From contig NIVC01001607.1 of the NCBI GenBank assembly GCA_002269645.1, forward strand, positions 1 through 64,000: a stretch of 64,000 bases of DNA. Reading direction: 5' to 3'. This document shows, piece after piece, positions 18,615-23,899 of the stretch (position 1 is its first letter; every line of letters begins with the position of its first letter). Origin of the DNA: Macrostomum lignano. Taxonomy: Eukaryota. Made by a program: the position numbers and the translations under genes. The notes below the pieces were generated by a model. It worked only from the letters and a program-made list of their open reading frames with translations, was not told the origin of the DNA and searched no databases.

Positions 18615-18852
18615 CTAAAGCAGTTTTGTTCATTACAGGAATTTAATTTAACAAATACAGACAGAAAATACTGTAAAATTGACAAAAAGAAAGCCTAAAT
18701 GTTTATCAGGTGTCATTAAAAGTACATGACCTGCATTTTAATCATTATTGTTTCAAAGTACAATCTGTTAATTTTTTTAAATGGAGTTCCATCCTGCTAA
18801 TTATCAGTAAATCAAAATGATTTCAGCTCAGATTATCAATTACTAAAGCAAC

Positions 18853-19008
18853 ATGCCGTCGCACAAGACTTTCCGCATGAAAACTAAGCTGGCCCGAAAG
18901 CAGAAGGTGAATCGGCCAGTGCCGCAATGGGTTCGCATGCGCAATGGCAACACGGTGCGATACAATGCCAAAAGGCGGCACTGGCGCCGTACTAAGCTGA
19001 GGTTGTAA
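18853..19008 (+). CDS. RPL39: 60S ribosomal protein L39 (eL39), 51 aa, intronless CDS
   Basis: [51 protein letters not shown], with the hallmark NRPxPQW and RRHWRRTKL. It is below the ORF-track length cutoff. AATAAA at 19103. Confidence 0.97.
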
Positions 19009-19221
19009 TATGGATTGATTGTTTCGTGACGTCAGATTGATGTAGCATAAGTGGAATCGTTTGAGCTGGCTGCTGACATTTTGCTTAGGTCTGTTTGAAG
19101 CAAATAAAAACAATTTATTGTTGACGGAATCTTATTTGGAATTTCGGTTTTCTCTTATTTCTTTTTTCTAGGCACAGCTGCTTACTGTAAGAAGAATGTG
19201 CTCTTAATTAGACTGGGATTA

Positions 19222-19765
19222 ACCCATTCCTACCTGCTAATATTCTCCACCTGACCCATTCCTACCTGCTAATATTCTCCACCTGACCCATTCCTACCTG
19301 CTAATATTCTCTACCTGACCCATTCCTACCTGCTAATATTCTCCACCTGACCCATTCCTACCTGCTAATATTCTCCACCTGACCCATTCCTACCTGCTAA
19401 TATTCTCCACCTGACCCATTCCTACCTGCTAATATTCTCCACCTGACCCATTCCCACCTGCTAATATTCTCCTCCTGACCCATTCCTACCTGCTAATATT
19501 CTCCACCTGACCCATTCCTACCTGCTAATATTCTCCACCTGACCCATTCCTACCTGCTAATATTCTCCACCTGACCCATTACTACCTGCTAATATTCTCC
19601 ACCTGACCCATTCCTACCTGCTAATATTCTCCACCTGACCCATTCCTACCTGCTAATATTCTCCACCTGACCCATTCCTACCTGCTAATATTCTCCACCT
19701 GACCCATTCCTACCTGCTAATATTCTCCACCTGACCCATTCCTACCTGCTAATATTCTCCACCTG
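19222..19765. repeat. 32-bp minisatellite between RPL39 and COQ10
   Basis: Unit CTGACCCATTCCTACCTGCTAATATTCTCCAC; period 32 (19223 to 19255). Confidence 0.95.
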
Positions 19766-19856
19766 AGCTACCCAACCTTTTCATGCACTCTACTGCTGTC
19801 GCTGCCTAACCTTTTTTACCGGCCTCCTCTGCGGTCCCAAGAGGTCGACTATTAAG

Positions 19857-20498
19857 ATGAACAAGATAAAGGCGAATCTTTTGTTGCTGCGCCAGCGTCG
19901 CAGTTTGTCAACTTCAATGAAATCGCCGACTTCAACTCCGGTGGCTACAATGCGCTACGCTGAGCGTCGCCTTCTCGGCTTCAGTCGGGAGCAGATGTTT
20001 GCGGTAGTGTCCGGAGTTGAGCACTATCACAGATTCGTGCCCTGGTGCACAGGTAGCCAAGTTGAAGATCGCCGTCAGCTTGTTGATGTTGCTAATTTTG
20101 GCCTACCCGGCGCTGCCGGTGTCAGCGGGCCAGGCGAACAATTCACTGGCCGGCTAAGCATCGGGTTCCCGCCCTTGTTGCAGCAGAGCTACAGCTCCGT
20201 AGTCACGTGCTGCCGGCCTCAGCTTGTTCATTCGCGTTGTACAGACGCAAATCTGTTTCGTCTGCTAGATACAACTTGGCGATTTCATCCCGGCTTGAGT
20301 GGCCGGCCAGCCACTTGCATACTCGATTTCGGCGTTGAATTCGCTTTTCAAAGCAGTTTGCACACCTCCTTAGCAGATCTGTTCTTTGATCGGGTGGTCA
20401 CCGCCATGGTGTCTGCGTTCCTGCACGAGGCCGGGCGGCGATACGGGCCGGAGAGTGTAGGGCCGCAGCGGCCTACTGTTCTGGTGTACAAGAGATGA
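19857..20498 (+). CDS. COQ10: Coenzyme Q-binding protein COQ10 (START/polyketide cyclase fold), 213 aa
   Basis: Arg/Ser-rich N-terminus resembling a mitochondrial presequence, then YAERRLLGFSREQMFAVVSGVEHYHRFVPWC...LSIGFPP...WRF...CILDFGVEFAFQSSLH...FFDRVVTAMVSAF. AATAAA at 21065. Confidence 0.93.
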   Translation: MNKIKANLLLLRQRRSLSTSMKSPTSTPVATMRYAERRLLGFSREQMFAVVSGVEHYHRFVPWCTGSQVEDRRQLVDVANFGLPGAAGVSGPGEQFTGRLSIGFPPLLQQSYSSVVTCCRPQLVHSRCTDANLFRLLDTTWRFHPGLSGRPATCILDFGVEFAFQSSLHTSLADLFFDRVVTAMVSAFLHEAGRRYGPESVGPQRPTVLVYKR

Positions 20499-21229
20499 TG
20501 GCATCGGCAATCTGGCCTGAATCGGAAGTTAATTGTTCTTGCAAAAGAAGTGACGACATGATATACAATAGTAGAGATTCGCAGGCTGAGGCAATTCTGC
20601 CCATTCTGCACATCCTGAACGCACACGCTCACACAGGGTGTACAGCAGCCCTGACTCAAATCCTCAGGGGTCATCGGAATAGGCATGACTGTTGGCCTCA
20701 TCTCTCTGACTGCATATCAACTGTTCTATTGGCGTATTTCAAGGACAGTTACAACTATCTTTCGTCTCGGGCATGAGCTTTACTGTCACCGATGCTCAGT
20801 CTGGTGCTGCTCAATCATTTCTTTATTAATATGCTGTAGTAATTGTACAGCTCCTGTGATACAATATAAATAGTTGAAATGACCTGTATGCTTTATGCGT
20901 TTATTGATAGACAAGGTTATATTGCTGTCTTATCAACTATTGTATTGTGAATTTGTGTATTGTGTAGTCAGTGCAGCACGTCTTTGATGCAGACATGCAG
21001 GGTTTTGTGTCTTACTAGCCCATACCACTGCATCCTGGGCTTGTGTCTGCCTTTTATTTGTAGTAATAAAACAAAACAAAAATATTTAATTTCGACATAG
21101 AGTCGTTCGCGTGGAAGTTACAAAGTTGTGAGTTTCTTCTTACATTGAGTTAAATAGGTTGGGAATGGGTAGGAATCTATGTGGGGGCTTTAGAGGTATC
21201 ACAATAGAGGGGGGTTTATTTAAAGTATG

Positions 21230-21850: not shown

Positions 21851-21917
21851 AGCATCAACAACAGATTGATTAAGTTCCAATGTTTGTATCGCAGAAATTT
21901 TACTATTCAAATTTCAG

Positions 21918-22959
21918 GCCGAAGGTCACTCCGTGTTTCGCGCAACGCCTCAACAGCTGCAGGCTTACAGCCGGTTCTGCAGCTACACGGAAGAGGAAGT
22001 CAACCAAGTGCTGGCCAAGTACCGCCAATTGGATAGGAGCAGAAACCACACTGCCGGTGTGTGGTACGAAGATCTGGCTGGAAAATGCACTGAAATGCAG
22101 GTGCGCTTTAAGTATTCGCTGGGTGTCTGACATTCCGTCTCCACTCTGATATGCTTTTGTTGACTCCCCTTGAGATACTTAATGGCTCATTTTGAGATCC
22201 CCTTTTACTGACTCATACTGATCCTATCTCATTCCTAAGATCCTGTCTCATTCCTAAGATCCTGTCTCATACCTAAGATCCTATCTCACCCTAAGATCCT
22301 GTCTAACATTTAAGATCCTGTCTCATACCTAAGACTCTATCTTATTCCTAAGATCCTGTCTCATACCTAAAATCCTATGTCACCCTAAGATCCTGTCTCA
22401 CGCATATAGATCCTGTCTCACGCATATAGATCCTGTCTCATCCCTAAGATCCTATCTCACCCTAGAGATAGTGTCTTAACCCCAAGATGCTATCTCTTCA
22501 CTGAGAAATCTTGAGACTTCACTGAAGTCCTATCACACTATGTCACCATCCCTTGATATCCCTCGCCATCTGCCGCAGGGCAATCGTTTGCTTACGCTCG
22601 CTGCCAAGGCCGTCGCCGGCTCCACCAGCCGCCTCGATGTTGACCGATTCGTCAGGTTAGTCTGGCTGCTATCCAGCCGGGCCAGCGTGCAGGAGAAACG
22701 CGACCTGCTCTGGCGCGTGCTGGACCCCCACCAGACTGGTCGAGTGCGGCGGGCCGGCCTGTTTAGATTCCTATCCGCCACCATGGGCGGCAACCTCACA
22801 GATGATCAGCTGCTTGACCTAGTTGAATCGGCTCTGGCCGCCGCCGATCCGAAACCGGCCGGCCTGGAGCCCGAGCTCACTAGGGAGTATTTCTTCTCGG
22901 CTATGGTTAGCGATTTGTTGGTTTTTCAAAAACTAACCGCCGATTTGCACTATAACTAG
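21918..22959 (+). CDS. Calcineurin B / CHP-like EF-hand protein with degenerate calcium loops; start codon exon not established
   Basis: Exon 21918-22100 (TTTCAG|AEGHSVF...FCSYTEEEVNQVLAKYRQLD...TEMQ|GT) is joined in phase 0 to 22579-22959 (GNRLL...DVDRFV...QEKRDLLWRVLDPHQTGRV...MGGNLTDDQLLDLVESALAAAD...). It is collinear with the calcineurin B pattern. Candidate start ATG|GTAATT at 21257. AATAAA at 23109. Confidence 0.75.
22225..22470. repeat. 19-bp minisatellite in the intron of the EF-hand gene
   Basis: Unit CTAAGATCCTGTCTCATAC. Confidence 0.85.
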
Positions 22960-23186
22960 TAGTTATGTGATAGTAGTATCTACTGCGGGCGTGATGTTTG
23001 ATTTTCAGTGACTTTCTTAGATAATCTGCTCAAATTTTGATAAAACTGTGATTCAACTTTGATACAGTTAACTTGTGCATTCCATTATTATTGTGATCAT
23101 GTCCTTTCAATAAAAAATCTCTGATTTATTTATTCCTATAGTACTTTGTTCTCAATGAACAGCTTTACTAGATAAAAAATAAACTG

Positions 23187-23336
23187 GATAGATAGAGATA
23201 GATAGATAGAGATAGATAGATAGATAGATAGATAGATAGATAGATAGATAGATAGATAGATAGATAGATAGATAGATAGATAGATAGATAGATAGATAGA
23301 TAGATAGATAGATAGATAGATAGATAGATAGATAGA
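23187..23336. repeat. (GATA)n microsatellite between the EF-hand gene and VMA21
   Basis: Directly visible. Confidence 0.98.
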
Positions 23337-23407
23337 CAGCCCAGCCCCCTGCACCCACCCAGCTACACAGCAGTCGCCGCTGCACAATTCCAGCCTACCT
23401 AAGCGCA

Positions 23408-23820
23408 ATGCAGAAGCCACTAGCAGCAGCCGGGCCCGGCGCCCTCCAGCCGGACGTGCAGGCGATTCGTCAGCAGCAGCAGCAGCTGGGCACAGTAGCG
23501 AAAGTGCTTATCTCATTCAGCCTGCTGCTCATCGTATTGCCTATTACCCTGTACTTCATCACTAAATCGCTTCTATTTGAAGGTTGGTATTTTAATTTTT
23601 CGTTTTCAAACTCTTACCTACTTAAAAGTAGTAAAAATTGTATTTGCATTTCCGAATTGATTTAGGCTTTCTGTCCATCGCGCCGCGTCAGAGCTACATC
23701 TACGCGGCCATTGTTGCCGTGGTTACCGTGCACATCATCCTGGCCGGTTTCGTGTTCTTCGCCTTCTGGGAGGGCGGCACTGGTAAAGAGGTGCCCGATG
23801 CGGCTGCTAAACAGGACTAA
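23408..23820 (+). CDS. VMA21: V-ATPase assembly factor VMA21, 2 exons (23408-23582, 23666-23820), about 109 aa
   Basis: Two TM helices: VLISFSLLLIVLPITLYFITKSLLFE and SYIYAAIVAVVTVHIILAGFVFFAFW. C-terminal KQD as in metazoan VMA21. An 83-nt phase-1 GT-AG intron joins the exons. Confidence 0.92.
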
Positions 23821-23899
23821 ATAATTATTTATTATTCAGTACTAACCTGTGCTTGATTTATTCAGTAAATGTATGTGCTGCCTTGTATGCGATGCGTAG

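Follow-up and report, generated by a model that had tools for sequence, protein, structure and literature searches.

A candidate spliced-leader operon of RPL39, COQ10, a distant calcineurin-B-like EF-hand gene and VMA21 in Macrostomum lignano

Four genes follow each other closely on contig NIVC01001607.1 of the Macrostomum lignano assembly Mlig_3_7, which raises the question whether they are transcribed together and resolved into separate messages by spliced-leader (SL) trans-splicing. The window analysed here is a stretch of 64,000 nucleotides of this contig. The head-to-tail order RPL39, COQ10, a distant calcineurin-B-like EF-hand gene and VMA21, all on the + strand, had been read from the letters in the original prediction and was borne out, coordinates included, by Pfam matches and gene calls. 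RPL39 (18853-19008, 51 aa, single exon) matches PF00832 (E 7e-20, 70.8 bits), COQ10 (19857-20498, 213 aa, single exon) matches PF03364 (E 9e-17, 62 bits) and shows 49% identity to a COQ10B-like protein of Argonauta, and VMA21 (exons 23408-23582 and 23666-23820, 109 aa) matches PF09446 (E 6e-16, 58.8 bits), each above the Pfam gathering score. The third gene comprises exon 1 (21918-22100), which has no genomic ATG, an intron (22101-22578) holding a 19-nt minisatellite (22220-22496), and exon 2 (22579-22959); the splice is borne out by the deposited 184-aa protein PAA65905.1. It falls below threshold for the Pfam EF-hand (E about 0.09). Its best solved relatives in the PDB are calcineurin B chains (E 7e-7 to 3e-6), the match at E 7e-7 covering residues 38-201 and thus nearly the full length, and its closest relatives elsewhere are invertebrate proteins of ~182 aa (E 2e-13 and weaker), some of them named 'calcineurin subunit B-like' or CIB3-like, so that the label calcineurin-B-like is fair for a distant relative. 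Inspected by eye, its EF-hand loops lack several calcium ligands. The four genes are functionally unrelated housekeeping genes.

The surroundings are indeed gene-sparse, as had been noticed before: there is no other protein-coding call between 8853 and 29008, no gene was called in the 10 kb upstream of RPL39, and besides the cluster the rest of the window yielded no more than a cadherin gene and a single RRM exon. No opposite-strand gene lies between the cluster members, i.e., they are same-strand neighbours as in the published definition of M. lignano operons (PMC8629364). Three genomic copies of the locus were compared; they are 95-100% identical throughout, and because of this identity a constraint test across them had no power. 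The protein model P0016, which resembled an older paralogue, turned out to be a mis-modelled copy of the same gene.

The trans-splicing that the original prediction ascribed to flatworms is established for this species, which has one 35-nt SL (PMC8629364). Operons, to which 15% of the M. lignano genes were assigned, are defined there by a repeat-adjusted spacing of <1 kb together with a trans-spliced downstream gene; repeats inflate their spacers, and the repeat-adjusted intercistronic distances peak near 100 bp (PMC8629364). We consider it probable that the cluster is an SL operon of this published type. RNA polymerase II would start upstream of RPL39 and transcribe through the four genes, cleavage and polyadenylation after each AATAAA would free each upstream message, and the single 35-nt SL would be trans-spliced just upstream of each downstream reading frame to form the 5' end of the message. 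The acceptors used would be 19785 for COQ10, 21917 for the EF-hand gene and 23393, alternatively 23362, for VMA21; the SL would supply the start codon of the EF-hand gene, and the minisatellites would be neutral filler within the intercistronic RNA. Each upstream gene carries an AATAAA past its stop codon and ahead of the next acceptor, at the three positions that the original prediction had listed and a sequence scan recovered: 19103-19108 for RPL39 (95 nt past the stop codon), 21065-21070 for COQ10 and 23109-23114 for the EF-hand gene.

Where the SL is added is the point at which the proposal made from the letters had to be revised. It had placed the acceptors in the first instance at the AG nearest downstream of each poly(A) signal, 25-62 nt on, and such AGs are found, ending at 19171, 21100 and 23141, that is 61, 28 and 25 nt after the hexamer. 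If the SL were added there, the minisatellites would lie within long 5' UTRs. The pyrimidine- or AT-rich tracts ahead of these AGs and the AG-free stretches of 25-61 nt speak for such a use. The U-rich tracts after AATAAA are present as described, and an ordinary poly(A) downstream element looks equally so. An AG-free stretch of at least 25 nt follows 27% of the 49 AATAAA in the window vs 21% of random positions, so stretches of this length are common and unremarkable here. Moreover, all three first AGs read TAG and none fits the published M. lignano trans-splice acceptor motif [T/C]TNCAG (PMC8629364); the SL imprint described below, the 5' ends in the annotation and the N-terminus that homology defines for the EF-hand protein are all located downstream of the repeats, and the 5' UTRs would reach 250-800 nt with many upstream AUGs. 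Addition at the first AGs is therefore very unlikely. The motif occurs at a frequency of 0.0023 per nt in the window, and in the non-coding sequence preceding the reading frames its + strand occurrences are limited to 18826, 21917 and 23393; one more, at 23008, lies within the 3' UTR of the EF-hand gene. From the alternative acceptors listed earlier (19841, 21157 and 23393), 23393 is thus retained and the others are not. In every copy of the locus 5'-partial coding starts are annotated 3-10 nt past the proposed acceptors. The SL acceptors are likely to lie just upstream of the reading frames, past the minisatellites, at 19785, 21917 and 23393, which places them more precisely than before.

The EF-hand gene has no in-frame ATG, GTG or TTG between the stop at 21867 and position 21933. 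A TTTCAG that fits the motif ends at 21917 (21912-21917), and only at this acceptor is the AUG at the end of the SL in frame. The SL AUG joined to the exon from 21918 would give a protein beginning MAEGHSVF, which is colinear with the ~182-aa relatives and just 2 aa longer, and the homology to these relatives starts at this very acceptor. The gene thus appears to depend on the terminal AUG of the SL for its start codon, which would account for its deposition as a 5'-partial protein, and MAEGHSVF is probably the true N-terminus. An upstream first exon (ATG at 21165, donor 21195/21196 joined to 21895) was considered and rejected: its ATG is located inside a degenerate repeat copy, and it would add 17 residues before an N-terminus that is already colinear with the relatives. 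An acceptor at 21924, suggested by the annotated start at 21927, would leave no in-frame AUG; we ascribe the offset of that start to annotation imprecision, since starts 3-10 nt past motif acceptors are annotated at other genes too.

For COQ10 the evidence is of another kind. At the acceptor (19778-19785) the window reads TTTTCATG, whereas both paralogous copies read TTTTTCAG; the difference is CATG in the window at 19782-19785 vs TCAG in the two copies, which both carry [T/C]TNCAG at this site. CATG corresponds to the final four bases of the SL, and the annotated coding 5' ends of COQ10 begin 3-9 nt downstream of 19785. Three further replacements of CAG by CATG before genes, extending over 5, 5-6 and 12 SL bases, are present in locus L008; each of them reads in the direction of its gene, with no case on the other strand. 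Pilon polishing of the assembly drew on RNA-seq reads mapped by STAR (PMC5730564), a process that would leave SL imprints at acceptors. The CATG before COQ10 looks like an imprint of SL-bearing RNA-seq reads, and the SL bases that overwrite acceptor AGs in the reference assembly are most likely an artefact of RNA-seq polishing. The reference sequence would then be corrupted at the imprinted acceptor sites, and, where paralogous copies are available for comparison, the imprints would mark trans-splice sites without read data. That the SL-derived bases, from the CATG at 19782-19785 to the up to 12 bases in L008, are real germline variants is extremely unlikely; it would mean that trans-spliced mRNA templated gene conversion in one of several near-identical copies and thereby erased the acceptor AG.

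The main acceptor of VMA21 is likely the TTCCAG at 23388-23393, which fits the motif and has the ATG 14 nt further on; in the annotation the 5'-partial coding sequence begins at 23396, 3 bases past the TTCCAG, and at the same place in locus L002. Use of the SL at 21917 and at 23393 is suggested by motif and position. A CCCAG at 23358-23362 might serve as an alternative. It was used by older gene models: in P0011-P0013 of UniProt, position 23363 is where the model starts or an exon is joined, and P0011 could be reproduced exactly from exons of the window. At this alternative acceptor the SL AUG would be in frame. In the older models the EF-hand gene and VMA21 form one fused gene that runs through the stop codon and the poly(A) signal of the former, and these fusions are a hint of read-through. 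For RPL39 a TTTCAG (18821-18826) that fits the motif is located 27 nt upstream of the ATG and is conserved in all three copies, in which the RPL39 protein is identical. Its paralogue Mlig003250g3 has the same motif in locus L007 and an SL imprint 5 nt before the ATG in L008, and the acceptor at 18826 may likewise receive the SL. The SL AUG would be out of frame at RPL39, COQ10 and VMA21 (acceptor 23393), opening short upstream frames of 18, 8 and 3 codons, respectively. Taken together, motifs, imprint and reading frames support the view that the downstream genes bear signs of SL trans-splicing. An SL RNA gene is absent from the window and the other fetched loci, and an Rfam search of the window gave no match.

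About 60% of the trans-spliced genes of M. lignano are located outside operons (PMC8629364), and trans-splicing alone is therefore no proof of an operon. The cluster might consist of four independently transcribed genes with own promoters in the spacers and monocistronic SL trans-splicing, brought together by chance or by a history of local duplication. Besides the published preponderance of non-operonic genes among the trans-spliced ones, gene order would agree with this: the conservation check proposed in the original prediction gave no sign of a shared order, as relatives of the EF-hand gene in two annelids, Owenia and Capitella, are flanked by unrelated neighbours; other Macrostomum or flatworm relatives for deep synteny were not retrieved. 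On the other side stand gaps of <1 kb that are largely minisatellite, four genes that share a strand within 20 kb with no other gene call, and a transcriptional unit that the annotation gives to COQ10 and the EF-hand gene jointly. Independent transcription of all four genes is unlikely.

The spacers bear on this question as well. The RPL39-COQ10 spacer holds 17 copies of a 32-nt minisatellite (19222-19766, 98% matches), the COQ10-EF spacer 16 copies of a 31-nt minisatellite (21353-21832, with degenerate copies from about 21160) and the EF-VMA21 spacer a (GATA)n microsatellite (23187-23336), all called with TRF on the + strand. According to TRF, 64%, 34% and 33% of the three gaps are tandem repeat, in line with the earlier description of much of the first gap and a sizeable part of the others. 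The tandem-repeat share is 37% for the whole window vs 29% for the cluster, i.e., the spacer repeats are at background density. Minisatellite copy number varies among the three 95-100% identical copies and the unique flanks are conserved; the RPL39-COQ10 gap from stop to ATG amounts to 848, 1718 and 1166 nt and the EF-VMA21 gap to 448, 558 and 645 nt. The distances from AATAAA to the acceptors at 19785, 21917 and 23393 are 682, 852 and 284 nt raw and 137, 372 and 134 nt after subtraction of the TRF repeats, all below the 1 kb of the operon rule. The absence of AG and GT from the 32-nt minisatellite was dismissed as a special feature, as both dinucleotides are also absent from the + strand of 6 of the 32 other arrays of at least 200 nt in the window. 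The 31-nt array (21353-21832) contains on its + strand two AATAAA, five GT[AG]AG and many AG; as an observation against an operon, these AATAAA and GT[AG]AG could end or cis-splice a read-through RNA.

How many of the neighbours share a transcript is a separate matter. COQ10 (g6, g9) and the EF-hand gene (g3, g7, g8) have the common locus-tag prefix Mlig000057, unlike VMA21 with Mlig034379. SL sites and poly(A) sites were used to divide annotation units of this kind into genes. The tags could point to a partial operon, with a shared transcript for some of the neighbours only: COQ10 and the EF-hand gene might, for instance, form one unit, RPL39 might end at a poly(A) site of its own, and VMA21 might have a separate start. 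However, the authors of the annotation report a tendency of transcriptional units to be interrupted where operon spacers are rich in repeats (PMC8629364), and it is the (GATA)n array that sits between the EF-hand gene and VMA21. Furthermore, the repeat-adjusted gaps on either side of the proposed unit are the shortest ones, and ~115 nt of unique sequence separate the likely cleavage site of RPL39 from the COQ10 acceptor. A partial operon is possible and rather doubtful. Preferring the four-gene operon, we infer that all four genes may be co-transcribed from one promoter upstream of RPL39; for RPL39 itself, it is spacing and locus-tag numbering that would make it a member. Neither Mlig000057 nor Mlig034379 was found in full texts or in the supplements of PMC5816591 and PMC5730564, and exact-protein look-ups for COQ10, RPL39 and paralogues returned matches in the NCBI genome only and in no RNA assemblies.

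Operons of the SL2 type in C. elegans are transcribed as polycistronic precursors in which the upstream AAUAAA is located ~100 nt from the downstream trans-splice site. They too bring together housekeeping genes of unrelated function, ribosomal protein genes often among them. Their spacers differ from those described here, where minisatellites extend the raw spacers to several hundred nt, and we know of no Ur-like element defined for M. lignano. The 3'-terminal AUG of flatworm SLs reportedly serves as an initiator. The EF-hand gene would be alike, as judged from sequence and homology, with no ATG of its own and the SL AUG in frame, and would be unlike RPL39, COQ10 and VMA21 (acceptor 23393) with the SL AUG out of frame. 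C. elegans uses a specialised SL2 for downstream genes, and a U-rich (Ur) element lies in its intercistronic regions. M. lignano is reported to have one SL for all genes (PMC8629364), and a specialised downstream SL is not known in it. The closest counterparts are the published SL operons of the same species and assembly (Wudarski et al. 2017, PMC5730564; Ustyantsev and Berezikov 2021, PMC8629364), which have a single 35-nt SL ending in AUG and [T/C]TNCAG acceptors, as proposed here, and same-strand genes <1 kb apart with repeat-inflated spacers, as found here. There is no difference in kind, apart from the annotation placing VMA21 in a separate transcriptional unit. Since a genome-wide description of M. 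lignano SL operons, repeat-inflated spacers included, is already published, the cluster has little import for biology at large; it would be a typical example, probably one already within the published operon set. Conserved housekeeping genes are reported to be enriched among the trans-spliced genes of M. lignano, and the published example (Fig. 2c) comprises, as here, four genes.

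The genes of the cluster were placed by reading frames and Pfam searches, the numbering in the window being that of contig NIVC01001607.1. RPL39 (18853-19008), COQ10 (19857-20498) and VMA21 (23408-23582 plus 23666-23820) all lie on the + strand exactly where they had been predicted and score above the Pfam threshold, and a protein deposited on NIVC01001607.1 contains the COQ10 reading frame with a 5' extension. The third gene (21918-22100 plus 22579-22959, + strand) has only sub-threshold Pfam EF-hand matches. Calcineurin B chains in the PDB match it over nearly the full length with an E value of 7e-7, and an exhaustive search revealed relatives of about 182 aa in annelids, echinoderms, molluscs and one brachiopod, some of which are named 'calcineurin subunit B-like'. 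The surroundings are gene-sparse as described, i.e., 8853-29008 is without any further gene call. Elsewhere in the window, a cadherin or protocadherin-like gene is located at 48928-52408 (+; Cadherin domains, E 8e-68), the long reading frame of which enters an 11-nt minisatellite (51117-51609) that is probably intronic, and a reading frame at 3249-3650 (-) with a weak RRM_1 match (E 1.4e-4) adjoins a 35-nt minisatellite (2408-3231).

For M. lignano it was shown that a single 35-nt spliced leader (SL), CGGTCTCTTACTGCGAAGACTCAATTTATTGCATG, is carried by about 30% of the genes, that 15% of the genes are assigned to operons and that [T/C]TNCAG is the commonest motif at trans-splice acceptors (PMC8629364). 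Operon spacers are inflated by repeats, the repeat-subtracted intercistronic distance peaks near 100 bp, and operons are called from a repeat-subtracted distance below 1 kb together with a trans-spliced downstream gene; an operon of four genes is illustrated in the same study (PMC8629364). All three spacers of the cluster stay below this 1 kb, as the spacing from AATAAA to the acceptor amounts to 682, 852 and 284 nt raw and to 137, 372 and 134 nt after subtraction of the repeats called by TRF; the middle value of 372 nt would be smaller still with the degenerate repeat copies from about 21160 included in the subtraction. The cluster exists in three genomic copies (NIVC01001607, NIVC01001908 and NIVC01000598) with identical gene order and 95-100% identity in the unique sequence. 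In these copies the frame-to-frame gaps measure 848, 1718 and 1166 nt from RPL39 to COQ10, 1419, 1470 and 1510 nt from COQ10 to the EF-hand gene, and 448, 558 and 645 nt from the EF-hand gene to VMA21; since the gap lengths vary while the flanks are constant, repeat copy number drifts.

The original prediction was built on poly(A) signals and repeats, and both were recovered: AATAAA occurs at 19103, 21065 and 23109 with the following AG ending at 19171, 21100 and 23141, and tandem repeats make up 64%, 34% and 33% of the three gaps. However, both carry less weight than is apparent, given their frequencies across the window. Of the AATAAA hexamers in the window, 27% are followed by an AG-free run of at least 25 nt, compared to 21% of random positions, and the share of tandem repeats is 37% in the window as a whole and 29% in the cluster. 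Over the window (1-64000), 48 merged tandem arrays were counted, 33 of them at least 200 nt long, with periods mostly of 17-51 nt.

The acceptor motif [T/C]TNCAG has a frequency of 0.0023 per nt in the window. In the non-coding sequence preceding the four frames, it is found on the + strand only at 18826 (27 nt before the RPL39 ATG), at 21917 (at the start of the EF-hand exon) and at 23393 (TTCCAG, 14 nt before the VMA21 ATG); a further copy at 23008 lies inside the 3' UTR of the EF-hand gene. SL addition at the first AG after each poly(A) signal (19171, 21100, 23141), as preferred in the original prediction, is very improbable: these AGs do follow AATAAA, but all three are TAG and none fits the published motif. 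For VMA21, the 5'-partial deposited coding start is at 23396, three bases past TTCCAG, in both annotated copies, and older UniProt models have their start or an exon junction at 23363, behind a CCCAG whose AG may serve as an alternative acceptor. Deposited coding starts 3-10 nt past motif acceptors are also found for COQ10, the EF-hand gene, a paralogue of RPL39, a kinase gene and an RPL14-like gene, and this small offset seems to be inherent in the annotation. With the inferred acceptors (first bases 18827, 19786 and 23394) the terminal AUG of the SL would be out of frame for RPL39, COQ10 and VMA21, opening upstream frames of 18, 8 and 3 codons, respectively, of which the one of RPL39 overlaps the true start.

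The EF-hand gene differs in its start. Its frame has a stop at 21867 and thereafter no ATG, GTG or TTG before 21933, the first in-frame ATG being 60 codons into the exon; its relatives begin with MG..., the alignment of their N-termini starting two residues inside the exon. Among the acceptor candidates 21894, 21917 and 21924, only 21917 brings the SL AUG in frame, yielding MAEGHSVF... with 188 aa (relatives: 181-183 aa). Because a genomic start is missing and the SL AUG is in frame at 21917, the gene seems to need the SL for full-length translation, and its start codon is probably SL-donated, as judged from the sequence.

For COQ10, the acceptor is indicated by a comparison of copies: where the window (19776-19790) has CCTTTTCATG/CACTC, both paralogous copies have CCTTTTTCAG/CACTC. 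By three adjacent differences, TCAG is turned into CATG (19782-19785), identical to the four 3'-terminal bases of the SL. All fetched paralogous loci were scanned for sites with CAG in one copy but not in the other, resulting in about fifty sites, nearly all of them single substitutions. Four are multi-base replacements ending in CATG, all on the gene strand just upstream of annotated genes. Besides the COQ10 site, these are three sites in the fetched locus of NIVC01003150.1 (locus positions 9988-9992, 11452-11463 and 19418-19423): AATGCATG replacing AATTCCAG before the RPL39 paralogue, ATTTATTGCATG (12 SL bases) replacing ATTTTGTTCCAG before an amino-acid permease gene, and AATGCATG replacing AATTGCAG before the RPL14-like gene. 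Thus, 4-12 bases of the SL 3' end (...ATTTATTGCATG) stand in place of ...CAG in one copy, while the paralogous copy retains CAG. As the Mlig_3_7 assembly was polished by Pilon with STAR-mapped RNA-seq reads (PMC5730564), heavily used acceptors most likely had their upstream bases replaced by those of SL-bearing reads; no other simple explanation is apparent to us for the presence of 12 terminal SL bases exactly at an acceptor. Read in this way, the window itself would record SL addition between 19785 and 19786, and such imprints would destroy the acceptor AG in the reference and mark trans-splice sites. At 10609-10628 (+), CAAATTTTTGCATG agrees with the 14-base 3' end of the SL at 12 positions, which could be a further imprint or chance in AT-rich DNA; a homologous stretch was sought in two paralogous loci and not found.

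Co-transcription is the weak link of the operon case. The annotation of M. lignano consists of 'transcriptional units' assembled from RNA-seq, about 7% of which are precursors with several trans-splice sites that were divided into genes using the SL and poly(A) sites; clustering was done at 95% identity, and units of one cluster share a name prefix (PMC5730564). The EF-hand genes carry the locus tags Mlig000057g3, g7 and g8 and the COQ10 genes Mlig000057g6 and g9, and the shared prefix therefore indicates that at least one assembled unit spans COQ10 and the EF-hand gene. The EF-hand gene is g3 in the window, and COQ10 and the EF-hand gene are g6 and g7 in the second copy; as a guess, RPL39 could fit into this numbering as g1 and g5. 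The prefix number is low, and if prefixes follow the cd-hit length order, the unit would rank with the longest of the assembly and exceed COQ10 plus the EF-hand gene by far, which would point to a transcript reaching well past the cluster. The COQ10-EF spacer contains AATAAA twice and GT[AG]AG five times on the + strand, which counts against read-through. VMA21 is tagged Mlig034379g1 and g3, a separate transcriptional unit, and an operon comprising only part of the cluster is possible, yet unlikely. According to the authors, units are prone to breakage in repeat-rich spacers (PMC8629364), and the repeat-rich spacer ahead of VMA21 holds (GATA)n. An older UniProt gene model is exactly reproduced by joining 21906-22100, 22579-22905, 23363-23582 and 23666-23820; its 'intron' crosses the EF-hand stop codon, the poly(A) signal and a microsatellite, and the model, if RNA-based, would show read-through. 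In the UniProt models A0A1I8FZR4 and A0A1I8FZ78 (298 and 299 aa; within 21906-23820), the EF-hand protein is joined to VMA21 by a splice from ATG/GTTAGC (22905/22906) to CCCAG (23362), past the EF-hand stop codon and poly(A) signal, which reflects either an error of modelling or actual read-through RNA. Transcription of the four genes independently of each other is doubtful and somewhat less probable than a partial operon. On balance, one transcription unit of four genes is the reading we favour with moderate confidence.

All sequence features of the published M. lignano operon class are present in the cluster, and none is peculiar to it. Compared to C. elegans operons the logic is alike, with a single SL in M. 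lignano. Gene-order conservation, proposed as a check, did not extend to two annelids: in both Owenia and Capitella, the genes next to the EF-hand relatives are unrelated, arguing that the order is not ancient. By-products of the analysis are the probable SL-donated start of the EF-hand gene and the SL imprints in the reference assembly. A second same-strand cluster is present in the paralogous loci NIVC01001713.1 and NIVC01003150.1 in the order protein kinase, RPL39 paralogue (Mlig003250g3), amino-acid permease and RPL14-like gene, with a motif acceptor or an SL imprint ahead of all four. Mlig003250g3 was deposited without a Met, and an ATG is present just upstream of its annotated start.
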